Shown here: in pieces, positions 29,625 to 57,131 of the stretch
Layout: the number at the start of each line of letters is the position of its first letter
Numbering within the stretch: the first letter of the stretch is position 1
Assembly (NCBI GenBank): GCA_002269645.1
Contig: NIVC01000011.1
Location: 248,001 to 312,000 of the forward strand
Direction of reading: 5' to 3'
DNA: 64,000 nucleotides
DNA from: Macrostomum lignano
Taxonomy: Eukaryota
The notes under the pieces: generated by a model
The model's input: the letters and a program-made list of their open reading frames with translations, nothing else
The model's database searches: none
Told to the model about the DNA's origin: nothing
Translations under genes and position numbers: made by a program

Positions 29625-30370
29625 CTACACGCTGAACTTGACCCAGTCGGCGCTCGTCTCGATCTCCGCCTCCACCTGAGCGTCGGTGAACAGCAGCAGG
29701 CGGCAGGCTCTCAGCTTGCTGTTGTACAGCACGTGTCTGCAGTTGCCTGAGTTGATGGCAGCCGCCATGCACTGCAGCGAGTTGGCCACCGGCTGCAGGT
29801 CAGAGTAGCAGTACTCAGTGCTGGCGTGGTAGCTGGTCTGCTTGAACCGAGTCAGCTTCCACGAGGCAGCAGTTGGCAGCGGCTGAGCGGCACTCGGAGT
29901 CCACTCGCAAGCGAATCCGAGTGAGCGAGAACAATAGAAATTTCCCATTTTTCCATAGGATAAATGCAGTACGCAGTTTTCTCCGGTTCCTCCGTTTGGC
30001 TAAGTTGAAGCACCCCTAGTGAGTCATTCAGCGGCATGACGCCGTTGCCGTTGACCAACTGCCAGCCCGATCGGCTCGAAGATCTCTCGTCAGCCAAGTC
30101 GGTCACTCCAAACCAGATGTGGCAGCTGCTGCAGGCGAAACTGGGCATGCTGCTGAGCAGCTGCAGAGAGCTGTACGAGTTGAGCAGCTCGCCTCCGATC
30201 ATGGCGCACTGCCGGTTGGCCTCGCACCAGCTGAAGCTCCTCACCTTGTTCACGAATATGCATTTTCCGGCTTCAAGGCTGAATGGCGAGGGGCACAGCT
30301 GGGCCAGGGCTGGCTGCTGCTGGCTGTCCAGAAAGGCGAGAAGGAACACCATGAGGGGCTTGGACTCCAT
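29625..30370 (-). pseudogene. C-type lectin + PAN/apple-like gene, copy A (frameshift + nonsense)
   Basis: Split into ORFs 29852..30394 and 29625..29948. Against copy E it has a 1-nt deletion near 30013-30019 and a GAG>TAG change (30000-30002) at the E of the EPN motif. Confidence 0.85.
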
Positions 30371-30532
30371 GACAAGCCCACGCATAATAATCACAGGCTG
30401 TAGCCAGATCTTTAATTCGCAGTCGGCTTTTTATACGTGTGTATGAGCTTTGTTATAAAAGGTTTTTGATGGTATTGTCTTAACTCTACTCTCATTAGAC
30501 CTGCTAGGATTTGAAATCTTAGCAACGCTGCA

Positions 30533-30807
30533 CAGGGGCGGGATTTAGGCGGCGGGGGCGGGGGACTGCCGCCCACCCCCCGACCCATTGAGGCTGGCGG
30601 TGATGACGCCCCTGAATAAAGCCAATAGAGGTTCTCACGCCCTCGATTTGCTCAGAATGGCGCCCCTCTGTTGCGTATTATGGCGCCCCTCTATTGTGTA
30701 TCATGGCGCCCCTCTATCGTGTATTATGACGCCCCTCTATTGTGTATTATGGCGCCCCTCTATTGTGTATTATGGCGCCCCTCTATTGTGTATTATGACG
30801 CCCCTAG
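30533..30807. repeat. MITE-like end (CAGGGGCG...CGCCCCTG, 30533-30614) followed by a 23-bp minisatellite (GGCGCCCCTCTATTGTGTATTAT)
   Basis: 8-bp inverted termini; period 23 (30751, 30774). No TSD found. Confidence 0.6.
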
Positions 30808-30971
30808 TCTTACCAACATTTGTTACAAGTATAATTATAAAGCTTACTTTCAGACTTTTCACGTTTGGCATAAAATGTTATAATTTCAACAAAAAGCAAA
30901 GGAAAAAGAGGGAAGTTCTACCTGGCCTGGTGCGAGGCCAATGGCGCGAGATGATCGAATGTCGAGGGGAT

Positions 30972-31466: not shown

Positions 31467-32020
31467 CAGAGAGTGCTAGCCAGAGAATGCTAGCCAGAGA
31501 ATGCTAGTCAGAGAATGCTAGCCAGAGAATGCTAGTCAGAGAATGCTAGTCAGAGAATGCTAGTCAGAGAATGCTAGTCAGAGAATGCTAGCCAGAGAAT
31601 GCTAGCCAGAGAATGCTAGCCAGAGAATGCTAATCAGAGAATGCTAGTCAGAGAATGCTAGCCAGAGAATGCTAGCCAGAGAATGCTAATCAGAGAATGC
31701 TAGCCAGAGAATGCTAGCCAGAGAATGCTAATCAGAGAATGCTAGTCAGAGAATGCTAGCCAGAGAATGCTAGTCAGAGAATGCTAGTCAGAGAATGCTA
31801 GCCAGAGAATGCTAGTCAGAGAATGCTAGTCAGAGAATGCTAGTCAGAGAATGCTAGTCAGAGAATGCTAGCCAGAGAATGCTAGTCAGAGAATGCTAGT
31901 CAGAGAATGCTAGCCAGAGAATGCTAGTCAGAGAATGCTAGTCAGAGAATGCTAGCCAGAGAATGCTAGTCAGAGAATGCTAGTCAGAGAATGCTAGCCA
32001 GAGAATGCTAACCAGAGAAT
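31467..32020. repeat. 14-bp minisatellite (GCTAGTCAGAGAAT)
   Basis: Period 14 (31811, 31825), about 39 units. Confidence 0.95.
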
Positions 32021-32450
32021 TTTATTGTTGAAAAAGGAAAAAATGAAAACTAGCTGTGAAGACTGCATGACGACTGTTTTTTCGGAAAGATTCGCTTCAA
32101 GTCTGTTGACAAACATTTTATGTTTTAACTGCAATTTTTTAGTTCAGTCCTACCCCATAATCTATAGGAAAGCAAATAGCTTAGCATTTCTGTGCGCTTT
32201 ATCTTGGGCTTTGTCGGTCGCAATTCGGAGATCAAAGAAATGCTATTTACGATTTAAATGGATCGTAAAATCTTGTTTTATTTGCTTTAAAATACATTTC
32301 AACGAATTTCTCCGCTTGGAGAAGAATCTGATTCGACTTCAATATTACAACGGTACTAAATATATACAATTAAAATGTTGAAAGAACCCGAATAAAATTG
32401 TATAAGTTATGATGTTTAAAGTTTTTAATGTGCTACTGATGCTACCGGTA

Positions 32451-34195
32451 CCGTGTGCGCAAAAGGTATCCGGACAAAATCTTGTTGGCTTTGCTTTCCG
32501 AGAGTTTGACATACTCCGGGAATTTAAAGCATCATTTGTATAATATGTCTATGGCCCAACTTCTGCCTGGAATTTTAACCCTGATATGCAAAATGGACTC
32601 ATGCTGTTCATCCTTTTATTTCGAAAGCTTCGTTTTCAATCCGCGGATTTGCCATCCCAAGTTGTCACAAAATGGCAAGCTATTCCTTGGATCTCAAGAA
32701 GCGTGTCGCTACCGACTTGACTTCTGGAATGAGCGTGCGAATGTGTGCTGAGAAGTACTCAGTAGGGAAGAGCACCGTCGGTGATTGGAAGAAGCTGCTG
32801 GATTCTGGCGACAGCCTGGAACCGAAGGAGAAATCGGGACGGCCGCGGACAGTCCGGACACCAGACTTCATGGCCAACCTCGAAGCCAAGCGGGCAGAAG
32901 ACCCAACGAAGACGATGAGGCAAATTGCCCGAGAGGAAGGAGTGCATGAGAGCAATGTCCGCAATGCATTTCGGGAGATGGGCGTCAGGAGCTTCGTGCA
33001 GAGGGAGATCCCCATGCTGAACGCGGATCAGCTGGGGCTTCGGGTTCAACGGTCACGGAGGCTCCTGAATGACCTCAAGGCCTCTCCCGGAGTTGAAGTC
33101 ATCTTCTTCACGGATGAAAAGAACTTCACGCAGACACCCTACCGGAATCGCAGCTCTTCGCGCGTGCTGGCCAGGAGCAGTGAGGAGCGGGACGCCTTCA
33201 ACTCGCCACAGATTAAGCACCCGGCAACCATCATGGTCTTCGGCCTCGTCGCTTCTGATGGCAAGAAAATGCAGCCAATATTTTTTGACAAGGGGTACCG
33301 ACTGAATGGAGACGGGTACCTTGATGTGCTCCAGAAAGTGCTGCACTGGATTCGCAGTAACTATCCTGACAGGGTGCGGCCGGATGGCAGTTTTGCAGAT
33401 GGCTGGAACTTTCGCTTCCAGCAGGACTCTGCTCCAGCACACACTCGCAATGACGTGCAGGCCTGGCTCAGCGCTCACTTCGGGCGCAAGCGCGTCTGGC
33501 TGAAGGAGGACTGGCCAGCCTACTCACCGGATCTAAATCCCCTGGATTTTTCGATCTGGAACCAGGTTGACAAGCGGGCCTGCAGAAGCTTCCACACGTC
33601 CCTGGACTCGCTGAGATCTGCCATTCATGAGGCTTGGGAATCAGAGCTGACTCCGGAATATCTGGTGAGATGCTGCAAAGCGTTTCGTGGTCGTCTTGAG
33701 AAGGTGATTGCCCAAGGAGGTTCTCCAATCGTGGATTAAATCGAGTCTGGCATGCAGAGCCGCTTGTTGGAACCATTTGAGCAGCACATTTCAGCAAGTG
33801 GGCCAGGTGATTGATTCGAGGAAGTCTGACGATCTTGAACTCTGTTAGAAAAAGCGACCGCTTCTTTAAATTAAGTTTCACTTTTGTTGCTCAATGCCCG
33901 CGTTACGTTTCTCTTGTTCGCATTTTAGAAAAAAATCGTTTTTACGTTGTTAAATCGAACACGAGCTTGAAATTTCGCGATTTACGTCATCTACCTTTAA
34001 TTAAGCCATTATCACCTTTCCAGGTGAAAATAGACCGACCTGTTGCATTGGCCACTTTGCTGAAAAACGAGCTACGACAATTTGTTGCATTAAATTGCGA
34101 TGTGAAAATTCATTGATTTTGGGTACAACACGTGCATATTTATCTGTCCTTCTCTGCAACACATGCAAGTGTCCGGATACTTTTTGCGTACCCGA
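32451..34195 (+). mobile_element. Full-length Tc1/mariner-superfamily DNA transposon (maT-like), 1745 bp
   Basis: 26-bp TIRs at 32451-32476 (CCGTGTGCGCAAAAGGTATCCGGACA) and 34170-34195 (22/26 match). Flanked by TA at 32449-50 and 34196-97. Confidence 0.92.
32672..33739 (+). CDS. Tc1/mariner transposase, intact 355 aa, DD39D spacing
   Basis: N-terminal HTH region with SGRPRT; catalytic motifs FTDEKNF, FQQDSAPAH and WPAYSPDLNPLD. There are 39 residues between the 2nd and 3rd Asp. Confidence 0.95.
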   Translation: MASYSLDLKKRVATDLTSGMSVRMCAEKYSVGKSTVGDWKKLLDSGDSLEPKEKSGRPRTVRTPDFMANLEAKRAEDPTKTMRQIAREEGVHESNVRNAFREMGVRSFVQREIPMLNADQLGLRVQRSRRLLNDLKASPGVEVIFFTDEKNFTQTPYRNRSSSRVLARSSEERDAFNSPQIKHPATIMVFGLVASDGKKMQPIFFDKGYRLNGDGYLDVLQKVLHWIRSNYPDRVRPDGSFADGWNFRFQQDSAPAHTRNDVQAWLSAHFGRKRVWLKEDWPAYSPDLNPLDFSIWNQVDKRACRSFHTSLDSLRSAIHEAWESELTPEYLVRCCKAFRGRLEKVIAQGGSPIVD

Positions 34196-35521
34196 TACTT
34201 CCACAAATTTCGAAAGTAGCATCATAACAAATCTTCAAAGTCAAATGTTGAAAGCAAGACAAAGCGTTTTTCTCCATCGTGAACCAGGGGCTTTCTTTCT
34301 CTTGCTTTCGGGAGTTTCCAGACTCGTCTGCTTTAGTAAAGACAATTTTGCCAAGTCAGTTAAGAAAGCTACGTGTACTTAGATGATAGATATCTAAAAA
34401 TAATAAAACGAGTTAAACGCTTTTTCGCTAGCCCACAAAAGCAGAGCAAAATCAGAAGAGCGAAGCATAAGATAAGCTAGATTTCGATACTGCTCGAAAA
34501 AGGAGAAGTTGGAATCTAATCAACACAAAAGCAAAAAGAACTAGAATAATAAACTAAATGCAGGGAAAATGACGTCAAATGCTATAAAAATTGATAAAAG
34601 TTGGTAATTTTCAAGTGTTTTATTTCCCTGTGTTGGGATTTTGATAATCATGTATGTCGAAAACAGCTGTTATTAAAATGGTCTATTTCGAAAATATTAT
34701 TTTCATCCAAACTATGTTTTTCATTGTCAGCAACTCCATCATCTGGCAGGCAAAGTCCACCCGCAAGCAGAACCGAAAAGTTCATTCATTCAATGTTGCA
34801 TCTGCATAATCAGACACATTAGATAGAGCAAATGTGTCTTTCCAGACTCTCCAATTTCAATCTATGGAGCACGGATAGTCACAGAGTTTTATGTTCCGAT
34901 GGAAAATAGATTCAACTAATTAGAAGTGTATTGTTTCAGAGTAAATAGCATAGGAAAAGTCATAAATAGCTGGGCTCAGTTATAGAACATTACTTGAAGG
35001 TATATATATGCCTCAAGTCCAGAGGAGACAATCATATGCGCTTGTGACAGCCAAAGTTCGCGAAGGTAGCAAACCAAAATAAGAGGACAAAAATCCCTCG
35101 AGCAAAACACACCTTGAACGAAATTCCGAGCGCTCAAGTATTAACAGAAAAAAGCTGGCGATCGATCGATGAGCGTTCGAAATTTTACGAGTACTTCTAC
35201 GAAGAACAAATTAGTGATGATCAGATCTGGCATTGAATAAAATTTGTGATTGCGCATTGCTCAAATCGGTACAGAAAGAGATACAGAAAAGTAACAGAAT
35301 ACAGAAAGTAAAAAAAAAATTCACTATCAAACTTTCGCGACAATACACCAATTAGAGAGACGCTTAGAGAGAGAATAACCGTGTCTTGAAATTTAATGAT
35401 GAGGACACTGAGTAGGTAAGAAGAAACAGACAATTTAAATTTTACTCGAATACGTGGTTTAAAATGTTTACCACAGAATCTGTTCACAATTCACTTTGTA
35501 ATAAAAAACATATCAAAAATC

Positions 35522-35905
35522 TCAATACACGCTGAACTTGACCCAGTCGGCGCTCGTCTCGATCTCCGCCTCCACCTGAGCGTCGGTGAACAGCAGCAGG
35601 CGGCAGGCTCTCAGCTTGCTGTTGTACAGCACGTGTCTGCAGTTGCCGGAATTGAAAGCTGACATGACACAAGCCAGCTCGGAGTGAACATTGGTCAGGT
35701 CAGAGTAGCAGTACTCAGTGCTGGCATGGTAGCTGGTCCGCTTGAACGGAGTCAGTTCAAAATTCAGATGCGTCTGAGAAGTCCTCGGCTTCGACTCGCA
35801 AGCAAATCCGAGTGAGCGAGGACAGAAGTAGTTTCCGATTTTTCCATGCGACAAATGTATTATGCAGTTTTCACCGGTGCCTCCATTTAGCTCAGTTGAA
35901 GCACC
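35522..35905 (-). pseudogene. 5'-truncated C-type lectin + PAN gene, copy B (near-identical to the 3' half of copy E)
   Basis: Matches 52626-53009 with few substitutions. Homology stops abruptly after GAAGCACC (35905), where the shared upstream block begins. No signal peptide or CTLD N-half. Confidence 0.85.
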
Positions 35906-37519
35906 GGGCTTTGGGCTGCTAGGACCAACCAGCTGTCAGGGACTTGAACTCTCCCAGAGAAAATTTTCCATCTGCTGAGCTCCTGACTATTCAAGCATTG
36001 CTGAAGACGACTTCAGCGACAAGTAAGTCGCTGGTATCACGGTAGAATGCGCCTTTTGGAAAACTTCTCTATAGAGTTGGAATATTCCCGGCATAAGCCG
36101 ATCGTAAAAATGCATTGCGAATTTAAAAAAAGCGAAGAAAAGAGTTGAATGCTGGCTCAGCAAGCAGCAATTGCCCGAGCAATAGCGACATTCGAACATT
36201 CGCTAGTTGGCTGCTTATAATTAGTAACAGAGAGAAACTTGATCCGTGAACTGTTGTTCGACCAGACAAATAACACAAGCATGATAGAATTTTGTTAACA
36301 GAATAAGCAGATTAGACTTATAACTCTCCTATAGAGCCGTATGTACGAGCTTAGTACTGGATGGAGTAACTATTGACTAGAAACAGCCATTCATGGATCT
36401 CAGAGTCCAGTAGAGTGCGTGACAACCACAGGGACGTCATATTTTCACCTGCAGGCAATGCCGCTTCTCCAGTGTATTTGTTACGGCGTCGCTGTAATTA
36501 ATCGAATAGATCGGATCGCGAGCGAACTCTTTATTTTGTGAGCAAAATCTAGTCCTGTACTTTATCTTTGTCATCTTACTGCTGCTTGGCGCATGACAAA
36601 AGATTTATCCCCCTCTTTTGATTTCCTTTTCCTTCTTGATTCCTCTCAACCGAGCCCGCTTCCTTCCCTACTTTTTACTGAATTTTTAGGGCCCACGCAC
36701 CTAGCCCTCTGTCATCACCATGCTGAGCCAATTTGTACACTTTCTTATGGCCAAAGCTGAGAAGGAAAAAATGCACGAGCATATTAGACTGGAGCTGCTG
36801 ATCACAGTAGAGAGCTACCTTACCATGACGAAGTCTTTTCGCCCACGCAAATATCCACGCACTTTTTCTTATTTTTTGCTGCACTAAACCGTGAAACAAT
36901 GCTCCAAGCAAGACAATGAAAAACCATCGTCATTGTTCTCCGTCGCGGAGACTTTGAGCGCCTTGCCTTGTTTTCTTGGCTTCTAACTGACTTCTACAAG
37001 GTTTTGAGAGAAGTAGCTAAAACACTAATTCACTGACGATGGCTAAAAGCGAAAATCATACTGGCGTTTAGGCTGTAGAAGGAATAAGAATGCAGCTGAC
37101 GATACTAAAACTCTTTGGGAGCTAAACGAATGATTGGGTGGTTGCTGCAAGAATAAGGCAGTAAATTTTTCGCTTTTTACGTTCGTCATTGTAAAATATT
37201 TTTTTTCTAAATGAAGTCCGAGACAAGAATTTGTAAATGTGGGACAAGACTTTTTTAACTACGACACTACCAAAGAATGCCAATCCAATTTAATAGCAGT
37301 GTCAGCTAATCAGGTAGTTAGGCCTGTAAAAGAAGGCTTGCAATGTTTATTTTTTAAAAAGCTCTTTTTATGCTTTGGGAAACAAAGCGTTTGCACTAGA
37401 TCACTTACAGACAGTCTAAAAGAGGGGAATTTACATTTCACAGAAAGCCTAAGTTAAGTTTACCAGAGGGGAATGTATACAAAAAATAAAATTAAAAAGC
37501 ATATGCAGCTTAGAATTTC

Positions 37520-37748: not shown

Positions 37749-38720
<972 letters not shown>

Positions 38721-39904
38721 ACGAGCGTAGACCCCATTTGACAGCCTATTTTGTTTGATTTTTGTGTTTTGTTATCGCGTGACGCTCATTGATAAAGCTG
38801 ACCAGTCAAAGCCCACCAGAGAGCTATACCGTTCCACAATGAGACTCAGCATCCTTGCTAAAACGAGTTATGAGCTATTAATTAAAATTCAAGAAATCAA
38901 CACGAGACATGTAAAAGCAATTTTGAAGATTCAACACTGTATACAGTTGCTACAGATTTCATTTCAGTCACGTTGCATACATAATCCAATGGTTCATAGA
39001 GCAAATGTGACTATTTAATCTATGGAGCGTCGGTAGTCAGAATTACGAGCTATTAATACAAATGACGAAGTCATGAGTCTCAAGCGTAAATTAGCATGCT
39101 AGAATTTTATTCGAAAAATCATAGATTCAGCCAAGTAGAAGCGTATTTTTGCAGTGTTAATAGCATAAGAAAAGTAATAAATAGCTGTGCTCATTTATAG
39201 AGCAATAAAGTATATATATGCCTCAATTCCAGAGGAGATATAACCATAAGCGCTAGTGGTAAAGCTCGTAAAGTAAATAAAGCAAAATAAGAGGACAAAT
39301 TTCTCGAACAAATTACTCTATTCTATTCTAGGATATTCCAAGTGCACACGTCATAACAGAAATAGTAATAGAAGCAATAGTAATAATAAAAGTATTAGTA
39401 GTAGTAATAGTAATATTAAAAGAACCCGTAATAAGCTAGCAAGGGATGACCGTCCGAAAGTTTACTCGCACTCCTATCCTATAAAGGAAAAATCGCTCAG
39501 GAAACTATAGCTCGTTACTACGCAACGAAGTAAGAAGATTTCAAGCTAGAAAAGCGACAGATAGAAATTAATTGTGAATAGCTCTTGCATTGATTAAAAT
39601 TGTCAATTGCGTACGAGCGTATATCTCGAATCGGTGCATAAACATAGAAAAATACAGAGTTCATAAGTTCGAAAAAATATATAAATATTGAAATTTCGAG
39701 ACAATATACCAATTGGAGAGACGCTTTATAACGATAATTAGGAAAAATGATATAAGCCTTTTAAAGCGCACACCTTTAAGGCTGCTGAATACGTCAGAAG
39801 ATACAGAAAAAAGTAACGTTTTTTTGCTCGAATAGATAGTTTAAAATTTTACCACAGAATCTGTTCACAATTCACTTTGCATAAAAAACTCCGTCTCAAA
39901 AACG

Positions 39905-40025
39905 CTAAGTCCGCTTAGAAGAAGCAAAATCAGATTGTAACTCAGGGGGCGTAGCATTTCACTAGCAAGCAATTCCTTTCTCATCTGCGCATTGATCTTT
40001 GCCGAAATTTCCTTTCCGATAAAAC
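39905..40025 (-). pseudogene. Degenerate relic of a D-type lectin gene segment
   Basis: AAATCAGATTGTAACTCAGGGGGCGTAGCATTTCACTAGCAAGCAATTCC...GCGCATTGATCTTTGCCGAAATTTCC aligns with copy D 47917-48005 (AAATCAGATTGTGACTCAGGGGACGTAGCAATCCACTCGCAAGCGAATCC...GCGCATTGACTATTGCCAAATTTTCC). Confidence 0.7.
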
Positions 40026-40043
40026 AGTGGCGTCTCGAAAAGC

Positions 40044-40793: not shown

Positions 40794-40959
40794 ATCTGCT
40801 AAAATTTTCAAAAGTGTAATACAGTCAATATGGTTGTAAAATTTTCAGGTTTTGCCAAGACCTGGTCAGATGCGCTCTTTCTTATTTGCATCCTGCATTT
40901 CACATTTTTGACGAAAATTTAAAGTCTGAATTTAGTAATGACTTACGGCTTTCTCCCTC

Positions 40960-40966
40960 ATTGGTC
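40960..40966 (-). promoter_or_regulatory. Conserved GACCAAT (CCAAT-box) upstream of lectin copies
   Basis: ATTGGTC on the + strand lies 143-174 nt upstream of the ATG in copies C (40960), D (48560) and E (53537), and also in the gene-less upstream block (44219). Confidence 0.45.
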
Positions 40967-42257: not shown

Positions 42258-42553
42258 CATAGGCGTAGGAACGTTTCAAAAAGTGGGGGGGGCAGGGGCC
42301 ATCTTTTAGCAAAGGACTAGGGAATCCAATTACCCCAAAAAATTCCCTAATCCCTGGGGGAGGGTTTTTTGGAAGACATGTCGCTTATGATGTCAATGAC
42401 ATTTTTAAAGTTCATGCGAAGTAGCCAAAACCCAAAAAAAGAGTAAAAACTAAGTGAAAAGACTACATTTTGCATTTAAAATGTGGAGGGGCCAGATACC
42501 ATTACTGCCCCCCCCCACTTTATGGCCCCACTGCCCCCCCTCCTACGCCTATG
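42258..42553. mobile_element. MITE, 296 bp, 13-bp TIR CATAGGCGTAGGA
   Basis: Perfect TIRs at 42258-42270 and 42541-42553. Absent from the paralogous blocks at ~36930 and ~46920. TSD not resolved. Confidence 0.75.
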
Positions 42554-45500: not shown

Positions 45501-47670
45501 ATATTTATCCTAGATGATTTGCTGATTAATTTGAGTTATCCGTTACGTTTCGGACATAACGAAGATGCCCTTCCGGAGGACCTATTGCAGAACTCAGAAA
45601 ATTCACTTGTTTATTAGGGCGCACGTTCTATCGTTAATTCCGAGCTCGAGGACCGTCAAGACTTCTGATTCGCTCTTGTTTTGGTCGGACCCACAGATAA
45701 AAGTCAAGGATTCCCGGAAGTAACGAGTCACCTAAGTCAAACCAAGGGTTCTAAAAGCTATACTCAAGGATCCGCTGCAGTAAGAGTTATTTGATATGCC
45801 CAGGCACAGTTGTTCTCCAGTGTCTAGAAGTGGGAGTTTTCGAGGGGCTGATCACCACTCTTAAACTCTTCAGTGAACCTCCATAAAATGAGGAGGTTCC
45901 TTCATAAAAAAGCATTACTCGAATCGTTAATGAGCTCTTTATTTTGTGAGCAAAATCTAGCCGTGTACTTCATCCTCATCATCTTACTACTGAACTATTT
46001 AGGGTTTGGGGGGTTTAGTCTTCGTCCGTGAAGTACGAACGTATTTGCACCTAATTTGTGCTTCATCTCTTCGATCGGAAGCCTTCTCTTAGTAAGCGTA
46101 CGTAGTTGCTGCCATCAGTTACGAGCGTACTTCGGGTCCGTCAGTATCCGCTGCGGTGAGGATCCCGTCGGAACGAAATATAAAAGAGGAGCGAACACAG
46201 CACTTCAGGCGGATTTGCGATTTCAGACTAATAGTCAGCAGATCCTGCCGGGCTCAGTGGGTGGTTTGGGAGGGCAGTGTTATCCTCTGGGAGTCTGGGT
46301 TGAAGATGATCACTTGATCCAGACATTTTTAGATTTGAAAATTCATGCACTCGCTAGGAACTTAGAGGAATGGCACTTATAGCCTGGTGAACTCTATTGC
46401 GCCAGAGCAGGAAAGATCTCGCGTGACACGGTATCTATTTTTAGCAACTGACGTCAATGCTTGGCTTTAAGAAGGCAAGGGGATCCCCGGGCACGTGATT
46501 TCAATATAAGCACACAAGGCCAGCTGTACAGTAAGGGACTGTGAGACGACAGAGCTTTGTCATGTGACTTGACTTAGCCCGATTCCCTCTCTACTCTGTA
46601 CTGCATTTTTGCAGCCCACGCACTTAGCAATCGGTCTCTGCAGTCGGCTAAGCATCACTGTGCTTAGCCAATAGCCAATTAGTACACAGTACACTTTTTT
46701 ATGCCCAAAGTTGAGAAGTAAAAAATGCACAAGCATATTAGCTCTTAAGTATTGCTATCCACGGAAGAGAGCTACCACAATTAAAACCTTTTATGATGAA
46801 TAAATCATTTCGCTCATGCGAAAATCCACCTTCGTGACAAAAAACTTTTTCTCATTTTTCTCTGCGCTAAACCGAGAAACAATGCTACAAAGCAAGACAA
46901 TGAAAAACCCTCGTCATTGTTCTCCGTCGCGGAGACTTTGAGCGCCTTGCCTTATTTTCTTGGCTTCTATTCTAACTGACTTCTACAAGGTTTTGAGAGA
47001 AGTAGCTAAAACACTAATTCACTGACGATGGCTAAAAGCGTACGGCTATGAGTATGACGCTGACGTACACTGGAACTTTCAAGAGGTATCGAATGATTTG
47101 TTGTTAGCTGCTACAAATAACTTATAATATTTGCAATAAGGCCCAAGATATCAGTGTTCTTTTGCGTTTCAAGTATTGTGTTTCATAACTACTTTTTCCC
47201 TGTAAAGTCCTAAGCAAGACTTTTTGAATAAAGCAGAATTGAAGGTGTGATTCAATTTTTTGATGCGTTGGAATTACGTGAATACGATGACTTTTTTAAC
47301 TGCAGGTACGACCATAACAGAAATCAACAAAAGTAAAAAGCTTCGAATATCAAATGATGTGCTTTCTATACGTTTATATTGACATTTCGGCAACGAAATC
47401 TGCTGTCAGTAGCGTCAAATAAAATCTGCGTTACCCCTTCTTAAGCTATATGCCCTACTACAATATGCATATACAAATTCATATATTCAGTATACTTTAA
47501 TAGACTAGATCGTACAGAAATTCTCGATATTATGTTAGTTTTGTATAGTTGAAATTCAGGAGACCAAAGTATGTTTGGATCTGTTTGTCTTCGAACACTT
47601 GAAATTTACTTATTAAAATTGTAGCAATGTTATTTGCTACATTGAGATGTACTGCAAGATTTCGTCTTGC

Positions 47671-48417
47671 TCAAAACACGCTGAACTTGACCCAGTCGGC
47701 GCTCGTCTCGATCATCTCCTCCACCTGAGCGTCGGTGAACAGCAGCAGGCGGCAGGCTCTCAGCTTGCTGTTGTACAGCACGTGTCTGCAGTTGCCCGAT
47801 CTCATGGCAGCCGCTGCACAGTTCATTGCGTTGCCAACCTGCAGCAGGTCAGAGTAGCAGTACTCAGTGCTGGCATGGTAGCTGGTACGCATGAACGGAG
47901 TTCGCTTCCACGAGGCGAAATCAGATTGTGACTCAGGGGACGTAGCAATCCACTCGCAAGCGAATCCATACTTAGCCGCGCATTGACTATTGCCAAATTT
48001 TCCATAGGACAAATGCACTATGCAGTTCTCAATGGTGTCTCTGTTTGGCTCAGATGAAAAACCCCACAGTGAGTTATCTAGTGGCATGATGCCGTTGCCG
48101 TTGATCATCTGCCAGCCAGACTTGCTCGAGAATCTCTCGTCGGCCAAGTCGGTCACTCCAAACCAAATTCGGCAGTTATTGCAGTTGAAACTCGGCATGC
48201 TGCTGAGCAGCTGCAGAGAGCTGTACGAGTTGAGCAGCTCGCCTCCGATCATGGCGCACTGCCGGTTGGCCTCGCACCAGCTGACTTTGTTCACCTTGTT
48301 CACGAATATGCACCTTCCGGCCTCAAGGCTGAACGGCGAGGGGCACAGCTGGGCCAGGGCTGGCAGCAGCTGGCTGTTAAGAACGCCCTGAAAAATCAGC
48401 AGATAATTCAACAACAT
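47671..48417 (-). CDS. Secreted C-type lectin + PAN/apple-like domain protein, copy D (248 aa)
   Basis: Single exon with ATG at 48417. Same architecture as copy C; loop reads EPNRDTIENC. Confidence 0.85.
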   Translation of the reverse strand: MLLNYLLIFQGVLNSQLLPALAQLCPSPFSLEAGRCIFVNKVNKVSWCEANRQCAMIGGELLNSYSSLQLLSSMPSFNCNNCRIWFGVTDLADERFSSKSGWQMINGNGIMPLDNSLWGFSSEPNRDTIENCIVHLSYGKFGNSQCAAKYGFACEWIATSPESQSDFASWKRTPFMRTSYHASTEYCYSDLLQVGNAMNCAAAAMRSGNCRHVLYNSKLRACRLLLFTDAQVEEMIETSADWVKFSVF

Positions 48418-49384: not shown

Positions 49385-50068
49385 ATCTCAGCATTCCCCC
49401 GTGAGCCTTGTCATTTCAGCATTCCCCCGTAAGCCTTGACATCACAGCATTCCCCCGTGAGCCTTGACATCTCAGCATTCCCCCGTAAGACTTGACATCA
49501 CAGCAATACCCCCCAAAAGCCTTGACATCTCAGCAATTTCCCCCAACCAAAGACTTGACATCTCAGCAATTTCCCCCAACCAAAGACTTGACATCTCAGC
49601 AATTTCCCCCAACAAAAGCCTTGACATCTCAGCAATTTCCCCCAACCAAAGACTTGACATCTCAGCAATTTCCCCCAACAAAAGCCTTGACATCTCAGCA
49701 ATTTCCCCCAACAAAAGCCTTGACATCTCAGCAATTTCCCCCAACAAAAGCCTTGACATCTCAGCAATTTCCCCCAACCAAAGACTTGACATCTCAGCAA
49801 TTTCCCCCAACCAAAGCCTTGACATCTCAGCAATTTCCCCCAACAAAAGCCTTGACATCTCAGCAATTTCCCCCAACCAAAGACTTGACATCTCAGCAAT
49901 TTCCCCCAACCAAAGACTTGACATCTCAGCAATTTCCCCCAACCAAAGACTTGACATCTCAGCAATTTCCCCCAACCAAAGACTTGACATCTCAGCAATT
50001 TCCCCCAACCAAAGACTTGACATCTCAGCAATTTCCCCCAACAAAAGCCTTGACATCCCAGCATCTTG
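49385..50068. repeat. 33-bp minisatellite (CTTGACATCTCAGCAATTTCCCCCAACCAAAGA), preceded by shorter ~29-bp variants
   Basis: Period 33 (49801, 49834). Related inverted units occur at ~50565-50670. Confidence 0.95.
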
Positions 50069-50930
50069 ACTTCCTGGAAAAAAAGTATACCCAATATAAA
50101 TTTTTGTATTCTCCACAAGCCATACGTGGCCTGGTCTGTATACCAGCAGTTGACACCCACGCAGATTTATACAGAAATGTAGAAAAATGTGTGCAAATTT
50201 CTGTAAGATTCATTTTTCCCATCTGAACTTAGGTTACGTTTCAGTGTTTGAGCAATATTCAGATCCGGTTGTGAAACTCAAATAAGATATCTATATGTAG
50301 CAGTTAGTATTTGCAAGAGTTTGCCTCCGGCACCGGTGGGACGCTTAAAAATAGAAGGATCTGTCTTATATTGAAATTTATGCAACAAATTAGTTTGTTA
50401 AATCGGCCTATTAATTGATTATTCACTCTTCATCCTTTAAGGGCTTGATATTCTGCTAAGTTCTCTGATATTTCGTATAGTCCTGTTTTCTAACTAAATC
50501 GACGTCTTCAATAGTTCCATGGATTCGTTTCCTGAACTGCACTGGTACCTAGCAAAATGCTGTGGCTCATGGGGGGGGGGTGGCTGAGACGTCAAGACTC
50601 ATGAGGGGATTGCTGAAATGCTGTGGCTCATAAGGGGGGTTGCTGAGATGCCAGATACTGAGATGGAAGCTGTTGGTGTTGGCCAAGCATCTAATAGAGA
50701 GTTAGGGTTAAGCTATAACTTAAAGGGAGGCTTTAGTTCTAAAGCTCAAAGGGATGCTGATATATTAGGCTTTTTGGGCTTTTGCTTTTTTTGCGTTAAA
50801 CATCATATTTGTCTTGAGAAATAAACAATAGGGACTGTACAAGATCAAAACGTACATGTAGTTAATTAATAAAGTATTTCTTTTTCTGTTGTCGTCCAAA
50901 CAGGGGCCGCAGATTGCTTGTGTTTGTTAA

Positions 50931-51248
50931 TAATAATCATAATTGATTACACCTGACCTAATTGGGCCAGATGTGCAACCGACAGCTCAGCCGCAGCTAT
51001 TGCGCAGCTCATCTGCGTACGGCTGCGTACGGCTGTTCAGTCCAAGGACTGGGGGGGGGGGGGTCGCCACACACATCTTCAATTACCCCAGCCAATGCTG
51101 GCACTAATTTTACAGCTGAGTGAACTGAAGCAATGCAGAGTTAAGTGTCTTGCTCAAGGACACAAATTGCTCCAGTGGGATCAGGAATCGAACCCCCGAC
51201 CTTCAAGTCGTGAGTCAGACGCTCTAACCACTAGGCTACAACCCCTTA
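50931..51248 (-). mobile_element. tRNA-derived CORE-SINE, copy 2 (full length, with TSD)
   Basis: tRNA-like head with A/B boxes, a CORE-like segment (reverse complement of GTGTCCTTGAGCAAGACACTTAACTC...CTGTAAAA) and a TAA-rich tail. 14-bp TSD CTTGTGTTTG(T/C)TAA at 50917-50930 and 51249-51262. Confidence 0.92.
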
Positions 51249-52625
51249 CTTGTGTTTGCTAACAAGTACGCAGGTATTTGATAAAACATTTTAATTGATT
51301 CCTGTACTTGTCTCATTCACACAAGCCTTTTGCCACTGTCATAAACCTCTGGACCAGTCCGAACTACGCGAAGATCTCATTTTTTCCTAATGAGTTTCTA
51401 CCGTAATCTTTAGTAGGTTGATCAAACCTCATTCAAAGATCAGATGTAGCTTTCTGCCGATAGTCAGTCAGGGCGGCTGTACATCCGCGCGCTTGTTTGA
51501 GCTCAGGAGACAGAGGAATGGGAAGAATTGACGTAGCACTGGTTATGGGATCGGGACGGTTTCGGCAGATGCAACCCTTCCACTTGAATTGTGAGGGATG
51601 TCTGTCCCGTGGAGCGAATTTTCAAACCCAGCAGGGTTCTTTATCTTCTTCAACTTTTCAGTACACTGCATATGTATTGAATCTCAGTGCGCGCTTGCAA
51701 GATTTGGGCCGGGGAGACTCTCTTTTCCCTCATCATTCTCTGCTGCACTTCTACGGACAACAAGCTTGCCTACAAGGAACTACTTCCTACTGCCATTGTT
51801 CTCACTAGACTCCAGTGCATAAGCTGACAGCACTATTGTTTACTAAAGCCACTTCACTGGCAGCTTCGGCTAAAGCATTAATAAATCATTGAGCTCACAC
51901 GGAAACCAGCCTGTTTGAGAAAACTCTTGTTTAAAGTCTAAGGATCTAAAGGCAATTAAAAACTTCGCCATTGTTGTCCGTCGCCGGGAATTTTCTTGCC
52001 TTCTTGCCAACTGCATAGACTTTTTACTAAAAGGAGTTTTAGTACATTGTAAAGGAATAATTGAAGGCCGTTAACTAAAGCCGAAAAGCATCCTGGACGT
52101 GTGGGCGTTGCAAGAACAGAGAAAGGAAAGTTGAGAACTGACGTTCTTAAAGCTTAGGATCGTTTACTGATGTATGCTGAAACTTTTGCTGAGTGAACCA
52201 ATGATTCTGCAGATAAAATAAAACGAATATAGTTTAGAATGCATGGAAGACACTTGTAAACGTTTGAATGCAGCGCAAGTATTTTAATGACTGACAGTCT
52301 ATTAAAGGTATAATTTCCTCCACATCGATGCGACCCTGGTTATCACGGTCTGTCATTTTAAGTAATTCTTAAGAAAAAGCAAAAAGCGGCGCTCGGGTCT
52401 CAATGATAGATGAATGATAGAAAATCACCTTTGTATATTGCTCGAAGAAAAAAGCAAAAAAGAAGAAAACGAGTATACTTTTGAATAGTTTTTCCGTGTA
52501 TATAGCTTAGGATTCGAAGGTTGTATTACAGATAACAAGTTTGCGTTTTTAGTTTTTATCGTTTCTCAGGATTAAAGTAATATTTCTTCGATATGATATC
52601 GGCATCAACTGACATCACGCAATTC

Positions 52626-53363
52626 TCAATACACGCTGAACTTGACCCAGTCGGCGCTCGTCTCGATCTCCGCCTCCACCTGAGCGTCGGTGAACAGCAG
52701 CAGGCGGCAGGCTCTCAGCTTGCTGTTGTACAGCACGTGTCTGCAGTTGCCAGAATTGAAAGCTGACATGACACAAGCCAGCTCGGAATGAACATTGGTC
52801 AGGTCAGAGTAGCAGTACTCAGTGCTGGCATGGTAGCTGGTCCGCTTGAACGGAGTCAGTTCAAAATTCAGATGCGTCTGAGAAGTCCTCGGCTTCCACT
52901 CGCAAGCAAATCCGAGTGAGCGAGGACAAAAGTAGTTTCCGATTTTTCCATGCGACAAATGTATTACGCAGTTTTCGCCGGTGCCTCCGTTTGGCTCAGT
53001 TGAAGCACCCCACAGTGAGTTATCTAGCGGCATGACGCCGTTGTCTTTGACCATCAGCCAGCCCGATCGGCTCGAAGACCTCTCATCAGCCAAGTCGGTC
53101 ACTCCAAACCAGATGTGGCAGCTGCTGCAGGCGAAACTCGGCATGCTGCTGAGCAGCTGCAGAGAGCTGTACGAGTTGAGCAGCTCGCCTCCGATCATGG
53201 CGCACTGCCGGTTGGCCTCGCACCAGCTGACTCTGTTCACCTTGTTCACGAATATGCATTTTCCCGCCTCAAGGCTGAACGGCGCGGGGCACAGCTGGGC
53301 CAGGGCTGGCAGCAACTGGTGGCTGATAATTCCTTGAAGAAGGAGCACGAAATTAAATTTCAT
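52626..53363 (-). CDS. Secreted C-type lectin + PAN/apple-like domain protein, copy E (245 aa)
   Basis: Single exon with ATG at 53363; signal peptide MKFNFVLLLQGIISHQLLPALA; loop reads EPNGGTGENC. Confidence 0.88.
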   Translation of the reverse strand: MKFNFVLLLQGIISHQLLPALAQLCPAPFSLEAGKCIFVNKVNRVSWCEANRQCAMIGGELLNSYSSLQLLSSMPSFACSSCHIWFGVTDLADERSSSRSGWLMVKDNGVMPLDNSLWGASTEPNGGTGENCVIHLSHGKIGNYFCPRSLGFACEWKPRTSQTHLNFELTPFKRTSYHASTEYCYSDLTNVHSELACVMSAFNSGNCRHVLYNSKLRACRLLLFTDAQVEAEIETSADWVKFSVY

Positions 53364-54545
53364 GATTTTAACAGAATTATTGTTTGTTTTTGTGAGTATT
53401 ACTCTCAGACTCAAGGTTAATAGTATCTTAGATTTAATTTCGAACAATGCCGAAATTTCTGATCATGTTTCCTCCGCAAAAAATCCTATATATGTTTCAG
53501 CAACCAGTAGTTCTCTGTGAGCTGTGTCGTGCTCTCATTGGTCAAAAGGCAAGTATGAAGGATTGAGCTGCATCTACAAACGGATGGCTCAGACTTTTGG
53601 TAACCTTTTGGGCTGAAATTTTTACGAGTTACCGCTTAGTTGCTATCCCAATGAGTTATAGAGATTTTCTAAATCGGATTTCAGCTAATAGGCTTCTCAA
53701 CTACGAAATAACGACCGACTCACCGCCCACCAGTTCTGGTAATCAATCTATGGCGTAATATGAGACCTTGAAGAAAACCATTCTCTCTTTTCATTGAATG
53801 AAAAAATTAAAGGAATCAGTTATTAGTGTCATGTTGAAGATTAATAATATGAATTTGTTTTAAACTGTGGAAAACTTCAATCCATCAGATAGACGGGTAG
53901 TCTGCTATCTGTTTCTGAATCGGTTCGACGCTTCCAATTCACTGATTTCAGAGGGCAAGCGTAATAACTTATTGACTTTTGCAGCGTTAGCAGTTTGATA
54001 TTTTTTCGTTGCTAGCTAGCTGGGTTGTAAAATCCAGTTTATTTTGGTTCTGTTGTCAACTTGCAGCACGGAATCATTGTAGTTTATCCTTATGTACGGT
54101 TAGCTACTGTAACACCATTAAGATTGTTCGAAATGAAGTTCGGTGGGGTCTCAGTTCAAGATCTGGAATCGAAAAGGTTGCATTTCTATCAAAACTGTTT
54201 GACTATCGGATAGACATTAAATGTGCGTGTGATTAGCTAATTAAATTGTTTGTGGGTTACCTGGTTATTTAAACACCAGAGGTACCAATCCTCTCATACC
54301 GACCGATACAGTCAAAATTCGATCATCATACTCGAGTGGGAGATTTTGTAAGAACAAGTCAGTAGCTGTCTCAATCTAGTCCAAACTTAAATTCGAAAGT
54401 ATAGAGTTCAACCAAACATTGCTTTTTCTATTTTAGTTTCGACACTTCGGGGTAAGTTCGGGTTTCGGGTTCGAAATCCCTGGAAGATCTTCGAGATCGG
54501 GGTTTAATTAAATATCGTTATTAATCCCCAATAAACAGTCAAAAG

Positions 54546-55858
54546 CAGAGGCGTCGCCACCGGGGGGACAGGGGGACATGTCCATCAATGTTATGTCTTG
54601 CCACCCTACCTTGTGTCCCGTAGTGTAAATCAAAAATTTTAATTCCGGGCGCCAAAATCCAATTGGATTCCTATGGCCGCCCACATAGGTAACCCCCAGA
54701 TTTTATAAGCCAAATTTTATACATAAAACTGTCATGGTGAATAAGTGAGCAAGTGCACTGATTCAGAGATTCGGGGTCAGAAGAATGCGCTCCTGTTCTT
54801 TGAGGTCTTCCTCTTCCTGGCCCTAGGTTCGAGGTCTGCGGTGCCAAAATGAGTGCCTGCAGCGCCAAAATGAGTGCCTGCGGCGCCAAAATGAGTGCTT
54901 GTTGTGCCAAAATGAGCGCCTGTTGTGCCAAAATGAGTGCCTGCGGCGCCAAAATGAGTGCCTGCAGCGCCAAAATGAGTGCCTGCGGCGCCAAAATGAG
55001 TGCCTGCAGCGCCAAAATGAGTGCCTGCAGCGCCAAAATGAGTGCCTGCGGCGCCAAAATGAGTGCCTGCGGCGCCAAAATGAGTGCCTGCGGCGCCAAA
55101 ATGAGTGCCTGCGGCGCCAAAATTAGTACCTGCGGCGTCAAAATGAGTGCCTGCGGCGCCAAAATGAGTGCCTGCGGCGCCAAAATGAGTGCCTGCGGCG
55201 CCAAAATTAGTACCTGCGGCGTCAAAATGAGTGAATGCGGCGCTAACATGAGTGCCTGCAGCGCCAAAATGAGTGCCTGTAGTGCCAAAATAAGTGCCTG
55301 TTGTGCCAAAATAAGTGCCTGTTGTGCCAAAATGAGTGCCTGTTGTGCCAAAATGAGTGCTTGTTGTGCCAAAATGAGCGCCTGTTGTGCCAAAATGAGT
55401 GCCTGTTGTGCCAAAATGAGTGCTTGTTGTGCCAAAATGAGCGCCTGTTGTGCCAAAATGAGTGCCTGCGGCGCCAAAATGAGTGCCTGCGGCGCCAAAA
55501 TGAGTGCCTGCGGCGCCAAAATTAGTACCTGCGGCGTCAAAATGAGTGAATGCGGCGCTAACATGAGTGCCTGCAGCGCCAAAATGAGTGCCTGTAGTGC
55601 CAAAATGAGTGCCTGTAGTGCCAAAATAAGTGCCTGTTGTGCCAAAATAAGTGCCTGTTGTGCCAAAATGAGTGCCTGTTGTGCCAAAATGAGTGCTTGT
55701 TGTGCCAAAATGAGCGCCTGTTGTGCCAAATTGAGTGCCTGCGGCGCCAGAATGAGTGGTAACAACACTGATTCCCAATGTACATGTAGGAATTCAGTAA
55801 TGTACATGTGGAATCCTTGGCTTCGTCCCCCACAATAAAACACATGGCAACGCCCCTG
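54546..55858. mobile_element. Non-autonomous hAT-superfamily element, 1313 bp
   Basis: 14-bp TIRs CAGAGGCGTCGCCA / TGGCAACGCCCCTG (2 mismatches) and a perfect 8-bp TSD GTCAAAAG (54538-54545, 55859-55866). Confidence 0.9.
54843..55752. repeat. 21-bp minisatellite (GCCAAAATGAGTGCCTGCGGC) inside the hAT element
   Basis: Period 21, about 43 units. The long ORFs over it are artefacts. Confidence 0.95.
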
Positions 55859-56387
55859 GTCAAAAGCACAGCGCTTGGTGACTGCAGCTTGGCTGCAGCA
55901 GCCATGCCAGTCATAGCTTAGAACACCAAGTTTGGAGGGAAACTCAAAAGAAACCAAAGCTGAAGTTCAGAAAATTACTTTGCATCAAACACGAAATATC
56001 ATGTCGACAAATTTTATTGAACATTCAGTTGGTTTTATTAACAACGAGCTCATTTTCAGCTTTCTAAAACTTATAAATAGATTTAGAAATTTAAGTCTAA
56101 CTCTAAATGAGGAATAACCAGCGTTGTACCAAAAATCGACCTAGGGAAAATCAGTAGGACCCTAAGGATTTTAATTATTGCCCAGTCAAAGTGGTTCATG
56201 GAAAGGAATTGTACATTTCGATAATATTAATTCACAGCTTTTACTTTTTCGTTTCTATTCTGCCATTACTGCGTTAATTATAAATTTAACAAAATAGGCT
56301 GCTTCTTTAGAAAAAACGCGAAAGTTTGCTAGATCTCAGCACACTACTTATTGGTTAAGTGAGTTCACACCATCTTCTAAAAATTGC

Positions 56388-57131
56388 TCAAAACACGCTG
56401 AACTTGACCCAGTCGGCGCTCGTCTCGATCTCCGCCTCCACCTGAGCGTCGGTGAACAGCAGCAGGCGGCAGGCTCTCAGCTTGCTGTTGTACAGCACGT
56501 GTCTGCAGCTGCCAGAGTTGAAAGCTGACATGACACAAGCCAGCTCGGAGTGAACATTGGTCAGGTCAGAGTAGCAGTACTCAGTGCTGGCATGGTAGCT
56601 GGTCCGCTTGAACGGAGTTAGCGTCCACTTCATTGGCGACGAGACAGCACTTGAATTGAACTCGCAGACGAAGCCACGGGGAATTGAGCACGGGTTGTTT
56701 CCCAGCTTGCCTGCGCCACTCCCAGCAGTCTGAAGCATGCAGTTCTCTAAAACTCCCCTATTCGGCTCAGTAGATGCCACCCAGATGGAGTCATTCAGCG
56801 GAACAATGTCATTGCTGGTGATTATCTGCCAGCCTGATCTGCTCGAGCCTCTCTCATCGGCCAAGTCGGTCACTCCAAGCCACAGGCGGCAGTCGCAGTT
56901 CATGCTCGGCATGCTTCCAAGCAGGTACAGAGAGCTGTACGAGTTGAGCAGCTCGCCTCCGATCATGGCGCACTGCCGGTTGGCCTCGCACCAGCTGAAG
57001 CTCTGAGCGGTGTTAACGAACACGCACTTGCCGGCCTCGATGTTGAACGGGGCTGGGCACTGGGCCCACACCGACAGCAGCTGGGCGCTCAAGGTGCTAA
57101 TAAACAAAATTAATCTCAGTTCAGATCCCAT
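56388..57131 (-). CDS. Secreted C-type lectin + PAN/apple-like domain protein, copy F (247 aa)
   Basis: ATG at 57131; signal peptide MGSELRLILFISTLSAQLLSVWA; most divergent CTLD (EPNRGVLENC, GSGAG insertion). The PAN part is nearly identical to copy E. Confidence 0.88.
   Translation of the reverse strand: MGSELRLILFISTLSAQLLSVWAQCPAPFNIEAGKCVFVNTAQSFSWCEANRQCAMIGGELLNSYSSLYLLGSMPSMNCDCRLWLGVTDLADERGSSRSGWQIITSNDIVPLNDSIWVASTEPNRGVLENCMLQTAGSGAGKLGNNPCSIPRGFVCEFNSSAVSSPMKWTLTPFKRTSYHASTEYCYSDLTNVHSELACVMSAFNSGSCRHVLYNSKLRACRLLLFTDAQVEAEIETSADWVKFSVF

Follow-up and report, generated by a model that had tools for sequence, protein, structure and literature searches.

The subject of this analysis is a tandem array of lectin genes on contig NIVC01000011.1 of Macrostomum lignano (GenBank assembly GCA_002269645.1). 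The stretch analysed, referred to as the window, covers 64,000 nucleotides (nt; positions 248,001 to 312,000 of the contig), and all coordinates below are window coordinates. Six neighboring copies, named A to F, all lie on the minus strand; besides a small relic, the window contains no further copy. The typical copy is a single open reading frame (ORF) of about 245 codons, encoding a signal peptide, a C-type lectin-like domain (CTLD), a short linker and a C-terminal four-cysteine domain related to PAN/apple domains. Four genes are intact (C, D, E and F), A is a full-length pseudogene, and B is a truncated pseudogene. Within these genes, short segments that are identical among the copies alternate with segments that have diverged heavily, and it is this patchwork that we describe and seek to explain.

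The intact single-exon genes are C (40044-40793; plausible signal peptide, Lectin_C E=7e-5, PAN_1 E=0.0099), D (47671-48417; Lectin_C E=9e-4, PAN_1 E=0.0093) and E (52626-53363; Lectin_C E=1e-4, further supported by the structural model described below). Copy F (56388-57131) is likewise intact and, on the basis of its segment divergences, appears to combine a CTLD of an older lineage with a PAN domain of the type found in E and B. Pseudogene A (29625-30370) retains signal peptide, CTLD and PAN regions and carries three lesions: a 1-nt deletion at 30016/30017, an in-frame TAG at 30000-30002 that replaces the Glu codon of the EPN motif, and a 5-nt insertion just ahead of the ancestral stop. Copy B (35522-35905), delimited by tblastn and blastn, is truncated at its 5' end and runs from just before the EPN position to the stop; its homology to the other copies stops at 35905, where a repeat known also at 41156 and 44329 starts. 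The relic (39908-40012, minus strand) corresponds to the variable CTLD/linker segment and is similar to copy D alone among the copies, with 78% identity over 105 nt to nt 409-513 of the D coding sequence (47899-48003). It sits 31 nt 3' of the C stop, in a region (39880-40043) that comprises 31 nt of 3' untranslated region (UTR), the relic and then a duplicate UTR start. This arrangement suggests that an older copy, internally deleted, left a remnant that became attached to C through illegitimate recombination.

The Pfam matches of the array proteins lie close to or under the profile cut-offs. Copies C (24.0 bits) and E (23.3 bits) exceed the 22.6-bit cut-off of Lectin_C (PF00059), and F (21.9) and D (20.4) fall just below it; for PAN_1, three copies (C, D and E) reach 15-16 bits, with E about 0.01, under the cut-off of 21.4, and F gives no match. 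An exhaustive profile search returned 709 relatives at E<=0.001, many of them about 240 amino acids (aa) long and matching end to end. Among 25 aligned family members, Lectin_C is recognized in 21 (best E=1.1e-11) and PAN_1 in 16 (best E=4.8e-7). An AlphaFold2 (AF2) model of E built from this alignment reached a predicted local distance difference test score (pLDDT) of 80.7 and a predicted template modeling score (pTM) of 0.75, against a pLDDT of 40.7 from a six-sequence alignment. Foldseek matched the model to the CTLDs of DC-SIGN, mincle, LOX-1, CD23 and MGL in the Protein Data Bank (PDB), with E values of about 1e-7 and target-normalized TM scores of 0.65-0.79. Four cysteines (C184, C197, C207 and C219) are conserved in the 25-sequence alignment, and residues 185-244 of the whole-protein model are predicted to form a strand-helix-strand-strand-helix-strand unit. 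The original prediction, made from the window sequence without database searches, had proposed secreted proteins with a CTLD and a PAN domain; this architecture is supported at the family level by the domain counts, the modeled CTLD fold and the plausible signal peptide.

Whether these proteins bind sugars is less clear. The EPN motif of the long loop is present in C, D, E and F, and reads TAG-P-N in A and ELN in B. None of the array copies has the WND motif of strand beta4 (Ca2+ site 2), the aligned position showing G-N-(Y/H/S/N/F) before Cys, and x-D in the relatives. Because the WND position lacks its motif, carbohydrate binding by the array lectins is plausible but not assured.

Among named proteins, the nearest relatives are two further M. 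lignano proteins, P0002 (50% identity) and P0004; in addition there is a homologue on a 967-bp metagenome contig, L001 (62%; ENA ERZ27315224, contig k141_2599464). L001 encodes the whole mature protein of an F-type homologue, with a stop codon and no in-frame ATG at the expected start of the signal peptide (contig positions 1-260), a defect that may reflect an intron, a pseudogene or an assembly error. The gene model of P0004 fuses the lectin to a sodium/solute symporter, and those of three other M. lignano proteins (P0003, P0009 and P0029) fuse it to a globin; these fusions are probably annotation chimeras. No independent DNA is on record for P0002, P0004 or the window proteins E and F, and no relative was confirmed among the 165 pattern matches that the family alignment had in JGI metagenome contigs. 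Beyond this circle lies a broad family of proteins of about 240 aa with signal peptide, CTLD and PAN domain (among P0008-P0137, from Logan, ENA and JGI assemblies), whose conserved C-terminus follows the pattern ...C(V/A)xFYFN...C(R/L)x(V/L)LYTDA...GWxKF. These proteins have the same architecture and cysteine pattern as the array proteins but share only 22-31% identity with them, a range that leaves aside the window copies, P0001 and P0002. The PAN core at their C-terminus varies, whereas it is almost invariant in the array, L001 and the M. lignano relatives, in which 35 residues spanning the PAN core and the C-terminal tail hardly change.

Two blocks of the array genes are identical at the nucleotide level. 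A 66-nt string, CAGAGAGCTGTACGAG...CTCGCACCA, occurs without mismatch on the plus strand at 30164, 40587, 48214, 53160 and 56928, that is in all five full-length copies. This is block 1 (A 30164-30229, C 40587-40652, D 48214-48279, E 53160-53225, F 56928-56993; all minus strand), which encodes WCEANRQCAMIGGELLNSYSSL, helix alpha1/beta2 of the CTLD. A 73-nt string, CTCCACCTGAGCG...GTGTCTGCAG, occurs without mismatch at 29670, 35570, 40092, 47719, 52674 and 56436, that is in all six copies, and the identity reaches one base further in each. The resulting 74-nt block 2 (A 29669-29742, B 35569-35642, C 40091-40164, D 47718-47791, E 52673-52746, F 56435-56508; all minus strand) encodes CRHVLYNSKLRACRLLLFTDAQVE, the PAN core. 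Exact matching thus confirms the block identities that the original prediction had reported, including the presence of block 1 in A, whose lesions establish it as a pseudogene. The strings had been quoted in antisense, as the genes lie on the minus strand, and the second was one base short. In the relative P0004 the middle of block 1 is missing.

Two more segments are nearly constant. Segment S4, the first PAN strand, is 57 nt long and encodes TPFKRTSYHASTEYCYSDL in E (52800-52856; equivalents in A 29796-29852, B 35696-35752, C 40218-40274, D 47845-47901 and F 56562-56618, all minus strand), with pairwise distances of 0-0.09; the other is the tail, the last 44 nt ending at the stop. When the full-length copies (A, C, D, E and F) are aligned by codons, 34% of columns are variable. 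Across 20,000 shuffles of these columns, the longest invariant run had a mean of 14 nt and a maximum of 36 nt, compared with observed runs of 74 and 66 nt.

Between these constant parts the copies differ heavily. Segment S3 together with the inter-domain linker comprises the EPN loop and strands beta3-beta5 (E 52857-52997; A 29853-30002, B 35753-35893, C 40275-40424, D 47902-48051, F 56619-56768; all minus strand), with pairwise nucleotide distances of 0.17-0.50, apart from B-E at 0.04. Segment S5, the PAN helix (E 52749-52799; A 29745-29795, B 35645-35695, C 40167-40217, D 47794-47844, F 56511-56561; all minus strand), comes in three cassette types, B/E/F, C/D and A, which are at most 6% apart within a type; B/E/F is 51-53% from the other two, and A is 32-36% from C/D. 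The heavy divergence of the EPN loop, the beta3-beta4 region and the linker that had been noted between the blocks therefore holds, with pairwise distances of 0.17-0.53, and extends to an 18-codon stretch of the PAN domain.

The contrast is equally sharp at synonymous sites. We computed Nei-Gojobori proportions of synonymous (pS) and nonsynonymous (pN) differences, averaged over the ten pairs of full-length copies. Mean pS is 0 in block 1 and in block 2, 0.06 in S4 and 0.04 in the tail, as compared with 0.28-0.36 in the remaining N-terminal CTLD, 0.66 in the EPN loop and beta3-beta4, 0.50 in the linker and 0.48 in S5. Synonymous divergence is thus strongly non-uniform along the gene: zero in the blocks and, except in S4 and the tail, 0.28-0.66 elsewhere. 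Among degenerate codons whose amino acid is invariant in the five copies, none of 43 varies inside the blocks, versus 32 of 82 outside (Fisher p=1.5e-7).

The original prediction had called the segment between the blocks hypervariable, a label that the substitution pattern does not sustain. The ratio pN/pS is below 1 in every segment and ranges from 0.3 to 0.77 in the variable ones, where pS is near saturation; in S3 plus linker, pS is 0.50-0.66 and pN 0.27-0.36. The close pairs behave in the same way, with pN/pS of 0.115/0.351 for A-C over segment 123-177 (S3 plus linker) and 0.027/0.094 for B-E. No segment shows a dN/dS above 1 that would signal diversifying selection on binding sites, at a sample of six sequences that leaves site-level tests powerless. 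Since pN/pS is below 1 and pS is nearly saturated, the variable segments appear to be old, with purifying or relaxed selection acting on them, and not to be diversifying fast.

Base composition follows the same division. The G+C content at third codon positions (GC3) lies at 0.88-1.0 in the two blocks and the tail, 0.74-0.84 in S4, and 0.39-0.6 in S3 and S5, S3 plus linker lying at about 0.5; the neighboring genes of the window have values of 0.39-0.61. Across the gene, diversity among the copies is inversely related to GC3 (rho=-0.74, p=2e-6). Such a pattern is a signature attributed to GC-biased gene conversion, and conversion in this array is probably GC-biased. On the plus strand, each of the full-length copies has an antisense ORF of 89-136 aa that spans block 1 (30036-30446, 40408-40788, 48020-48391, 52981-53337 and 56737-57006). 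We dismissed these as genes; they are most simply a by-product of the GC3-rich sense frame.

The noncoding flanks bear on the age of the copies. The flanks of D, E and F are unalignable within 5-10 nt of the stop, as the original prediction had stated for the array in general. Copies A, B and C, however, have similar 3' flanks, and the units of B and C are alignable on both sides; identity in these alignable flanks is 68-81%. More specifically, the 3' flank of B (34906-35509) is homologous to 39121-39889, a region 3' of both C and the relic (68-74% identity), and its 5' flank (35900-37462) matches 41156-43425, upstream of C, and 44329-47040, in collinear pieces of 68-81% identity. The region 44110-47040 is a gene-less copy of the sequence upstream of C (40854-41035 resembles 44110-44310 and 41151-41523 resembles 44329-44681, with more pieces up to 47040), and its repeat also borders B where that copy is cut off, at 35900; the region represents either a seventh unit, since lost, or a family of repeats that share one end. 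Outside block 1, the CTLD of copy F (S1-S3) differs from A-E at 27-50% of nucleotides, a distance equal to that of L001. Because the flanks are unalignable or only 68-81% identical, and because F is as far from A-E as L001 is in S1-S3, the copies are, as judged by these distances, old and diverged paralogues.

This age is difficult to reconcile with the idea that the copies are recent duplicates whose variable segments diverged fast through localized hypermutation or strong positive selection. The variable segments coincide with a PAN surface helix and with the site where CTLDs canonically bind ligand (EPN loop, beta3-beta4), which would fit such a history, as would the sharp contrast between constant and variable parts. 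Yet pN/pS stays below 1 everywhere and pS itself is high in the variable parts, the flanks have diverged as just described, and the variable segments of F keep derived states common to homologues from other sources, which marks them as old and not newly scrambled. We consider recent duplication very unlikely.

Direct evidence for exchange comes from the mosaic structure of the copies. A Sawyer-type permutation test on condensed fragments, which takes only polymorphic sites and is therefore blind to rate differences, gave a global P of 0.0002, and three pairs were individually below P=0.005 (E-F 0.0002, C-D 0.003, D-E 0.004). The closest pairs change from segment to segment: D-E in S1, A-E in S2, A-C and B-E in S3, and C-D and B/E/F in S5. 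In a sliding nearest-neighbor map, E is nearest to D up to block 1, then to A, and then to B. The points at which nearest neighbors switch are block 1, nt ~430-450 and S4, which fits the proposal of the original prediction that the blocks serve as recombination anchors between which modules are exchanged.

Copy B is the clearest case of transfer. Its coding remnant shares with E a tract at 35517-35905 (partner 52621-53009, minus strand) that is 97.7% identical, with 9 differences in 389 nt, compared with 80% identity to C. Similarity to E ends 5 nt beyond the stop. Both flanks of B are nevertheless collinear with the C unit, and those of E are unrelated to them, so that B consists of an E-type coding remnant set between C-type flanks. 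Pseudogenes A and B both take part in the exchange.

Copy F provides a second case. From S4 to the tail, F is only 0-6% diverged from E and B, against 29-50% upstream. This PAN-domain tract (56379-56621, minus strand) is common to B (35515-35755) and E, and F and B are 97.1% identical over 243 nt; the identity of B with E and with F extends 5-9 nt beyond the stop. Upstream, F shares derived residues mostly with L001 and P0004 rather than with its array neighbors (S1, 7 versus 1; S2, 6 versus 2; S3, 8 versus 3), and it also shares derived indels with both, whereas in block 1 (0 versus 4) and in S4 (0 versus 3) all derived residues are shared with the array neighbors. The comparison draws on two M. 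lignano proteins and on L001, the one foreign nucleotide sequence. F appears to be of one lineage with L001 and M. lignano P0004, and its constant blocks appear to have been overwritten by array neighbors; by this comparison copy F is a mosaic of two lineages. If L001 and P0004 come from other species, the F lineage would predate the species splits.

Gene conversion and unequal crossover had both been put forward as the homogenizing process. Since the near-identical tracts do not carry their flanks along, conversion fits better than unequal crossover, which we disfavor as the homogenizer. Homogenization by conversion, on the other hand, finds support both in the non-uniform synonymous divergence and in the detected mosaic tracts. 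The block identities are real and statistically strong, and conversion anchored on the constant blocks is supported.

A different explanation is that the identical blocks have been frozen, with no conversion involved, by purifying selection at the nucleotide level, whether for an mRNA structure, a target of small RNAs, a regulatory element within the exon or an extreme codon usage. The L001 homologue offers a test from outside the array. It differs from the array at 13 of 66 nt in block 1 and at 8 of 74 nt in block 2, synonymous sites included, which argues that the blocks are not frozen at the nucleotide level, and the equally diverged copy F differs at none. In relative-rate tests scaled to the adjoining segments, F would be expected to show 10-12 differences from A-E in block 1, and 0 were observed (Poisson P about 1e-5); for block 2, 4.5-8.2 differences were expected for the most diverged pairs and 0 observed (P 0.01-0.0003). 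The blocks are also intact in both pseudogenes. In A, 21 private substitutions fall in 546 nt outside the blocks and none in their 140 nt, against 5.4 expected. Nor did the RNA-based variants of this explanation gain ground: folding of the blocks is no more stable than that of shuffled sequences (z = -1.4, -0.3, -0.45), a window scan found no Rfam family inside the lectin genes, and we rejected an RNA-element reading of the blocks. Nucleotide constraint would moreover leave the mosaic tracts outside the blocks and the discordance between the flanks and coding sequence of B unexplained.

Several observations nevertheless speak for such constraint or otherwise weigh against conversion as the whole explanation. 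In comparison with L001, too, pS is lower in the blocks (0.23-0.38) than in the variable parts (0.73-0.86), and stretches of 28-32 nt are identical in L001 and the array. Some contribution of nucleotide-level or codon-usage constraint, or of conversion in the L001 lineage as well, is thereby suggested; the low values fit conversion in the ancestor or in both lineages. The block-encoded peptides are very conserved across species, and as the C-terminal 35 residues are nearly invariant at the protein level, purifying selection explains part of block 2. The outside nucleotide comparison consists of one sequence, L001, six array sequences are too few to fix the direction and number of conversion events, and, the analysis covering a single genome and a single haplotype, a polishing artefact keeps some small probability. 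On balance, we hold nucleotide-level selection acting without conversion to be unlikely, though it is the least unlikely of the alternatives weighed here.

In the case of an assembly or polishing artefact, reads mis-mapped between paralogues would have forced a single consensus on short conserved stretches, an error to which paralogous arrays are prone. However, the blocks are embedded in copy-specific sequence, and L001, an independent contig of another assembly, shows raised conservation and GC3 at the same places. In addition, the GC3 gradient and the tracts of 240-390 nt with few private differences are unlike the output of consensus polishing. We consider this explanation very unlikely.

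Taken together, we consider it quite likely that the locus is a tandem array of old CTLD plus PAN/apple paralogues under regional interlocus gene conversion, which is probably GC-biased and seeded in structurally constrained cores. We propose that short non-reciprocal transfers repeatedly overwrite the core segments, namely helix alpha1/beta2 of the CTLD, the initial strand of the PAN domain, and the stretch from the PAN core through the C-terminus, which would keep them identical at synonymous sites as well. Occasional longer tracts would carry whole modules, such as the PAN domain (C with D, and E/B with F) or, for E and B, the gene's 3' half. The EPN loop, strands beta3-beta5, the linker and the PAN helix would be too diverged for frequent conversion and would therefore keep the old divergence of the paralogues, and these diverged modules would in turn limit the extension of tracts from the blocks. 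Protein-level constraint on the cores probably started the loop, the resulting similarity letting homology-dependent repair template one copy on another. Feedback may then have set in, high identity permitting conversion and each conversion restoring identity and easing the next, while GC-biased repair would have pushed the third codon positions of the cores to about 90% G+C. The mechanism itself (conversion and not nucleotide-level selection), the feedback, the direction of transfer and any biological role of the variable modules are what we infer from the pattern.

A more elaborate possibility is programmed cassette exchange, in which A, B and the relic 3' of C would act as silent donors into the expressed genes, replacing the sequence between the blocks at a high rate in the germline or in somatic cells. 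The silent pieces do adjoin expressed-looking genes, tract ends fall at the constant blocks, and B and E are only 9 nt apart. If this were true, individuals or cells would differ in their combinations of CTLD-loop and PAN-helix modules, and the array would be an invertebrate analogue of pseudogene-templated receptor diversification. Against it, there are just three non-functional pieces and three or four cassette types, the one haplotype at hand gives no sign of an unusual rate, somatic variants or dedicated machinery, and ordinary conversion over evolutionary time fully explains the pattern. We therefore view programmed exchange as a long shot, about on a par with recent duplication or a shade below it. 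The broader suggestion of the original prediction, that the array forms a diversified recognition system (immune, adhesive or self/non-self), is speculation, the basis at hand being four intact genes, three or four module types and pN/pS below 1.

The remainder of the window contains other genes and several kinds of repeat. Upstream of the array lie two multi-exon genes on the minus strand (1942-13311 and 15380-19742). One is a large gene with an in-frame 30-nt repeat at 4437-4842 encoding PSDVAASE(A/V)K units, which we take, as a guess from its ORF translations, to encode a gamma-tubulin-complex-like protein; the second, a serine incorporator (SERINC) gene, has its best database match in an annelid, at only 55% identity. 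Between A and B lies an apparently intact Tc1/mariner-type element (32448-34198) with 29-nt inverted repeats at its ends (32448-32476 and 34170-34198, 86% complementary) and a 355-aa transposase ORF (32672-33739, plus strand) that matches DDE_3 and HTH_Tnp_IS630. A dispersed repeat with a tRNA-like core occurs at 50928-51248, 58162-58407 and 59024-59321 and also within the ORFs 14756-15175 and 57815-58369; spurious ORFs at two of its sites have a common motif, PQLPQLMLAPIL. Its core at 51176-51245 (minus strand) scores 29.9 bits with the Rfam tRNA model, with no tRNA call by ARAGORN, and the repeat is probably a tRNA-derived short interspersed nuclear element (SINE). The window as a whole is very rich in mini- and microsatellites (13 arrays scoring at least 300, from 17 Tandem Repeats Finder (TRF) rows of which some describe the same array; periods 4-176 nt). 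Four of these regions lie between the lectin genes (31467-32020, 37888-38339, 49487-50063 and 54836-55758); because satellites also occur outside the array, we regard them as a trait of the genome and not of the lectins.

The closest precedent for the pattern is found in protocadherins. In the fugu protocadherin clusters, paralogues have 3' regions that are more than 99% identical and raised in GC3 beside diverged 5' regions, for which regional conversion was argued, and the homogenization is lineage-specific (PMC1852091). Like the array, the clustered protocadherin variable exons of fugu, zebrafish and human are tandem paralogues whose coding sequence is homogenized to near identity in one part, synonymous sites included, with GC3 significantly raised there, and diverged in another. 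In protocadherins, however, it is a long 3' region of large exons (EC4-EC6/cytoplasmic) that is homogenized within subclusters of many genes, whereas in the array variable modules take turns with several short blocks (66, 57 and ~118 nt) among six copies of a 245-aa lectin, in another protein family and another animal phylum.

Other systems share part of the pattern. Concerted evolution with GC-biased conversion, as in histones, hsp70 and globins, makes paralogues within a genome closer than orthologues, enriches GC3 and leaves flanks unhomogenized; there, usually the whole coding region is homogenized, whereas the array is patchy and its ligand-site modules are left diverged. The sea urchin Sp185/333 (SpTransformer) and snail FREP genes are clustered, secreted, recognition-type genes with mosaic elements and conserved ends, for which recombination has been proposed. 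Unlike the array, with its four intact genes and pN/pS below 1, those systems are large, highly polymorphic and immune-inducible, with evidence that they diversify beyond the germline copies. Vertebrate Ly49/KLR and CLEC clusters and snake-venom C-type lectin-like proteins are tandem CTLD genes with a conserved scaffold and variable loops, in which conversion and birth-and-death evolution have been reported. They are multi-exon genes for type II membrane receptors or venom heterodimers, as opposed to the secreted, single-exon array lectins, and we know of no PAN domain or comparable alternating identical blocks in them. The idea of a diversity-generating retroelement acting on a CTLD fold, as in bacteria and phages, was set aside, this being a eukaryotic locus with introns in the neighboring genes. 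In the literature searched, we found nothing on this lectin family or on gene conversion in Macrostomum lectins; a paper on sand-fly saliva was discarded as a precedent, as it concerns Yellow proteins and not lectins. Regional concerted evolution with GC-biased conversion is thus a known phenomenon, and the family and phylum are new for it in the literature searched.

On present evidence, the array reveals no new mechanism of diversification. It offers a clean and compact example of patchy concerted evolution, in which GC3-rich identical blocks alternate with old modules within single-exon genes of 750 bp and pseudogenes join the exchange. One consequence is that whole-gene trees of this family are misleading, and orthology must be called per segment. 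For flatworm biology, the array defines a lineage-specific secreted CTLD-PAN family with a near-invariant C-terminal PAN core and exchangeable ligand-side modules, whose candidate roles are in the gut, in mucus, in adhesion or in reproduction.

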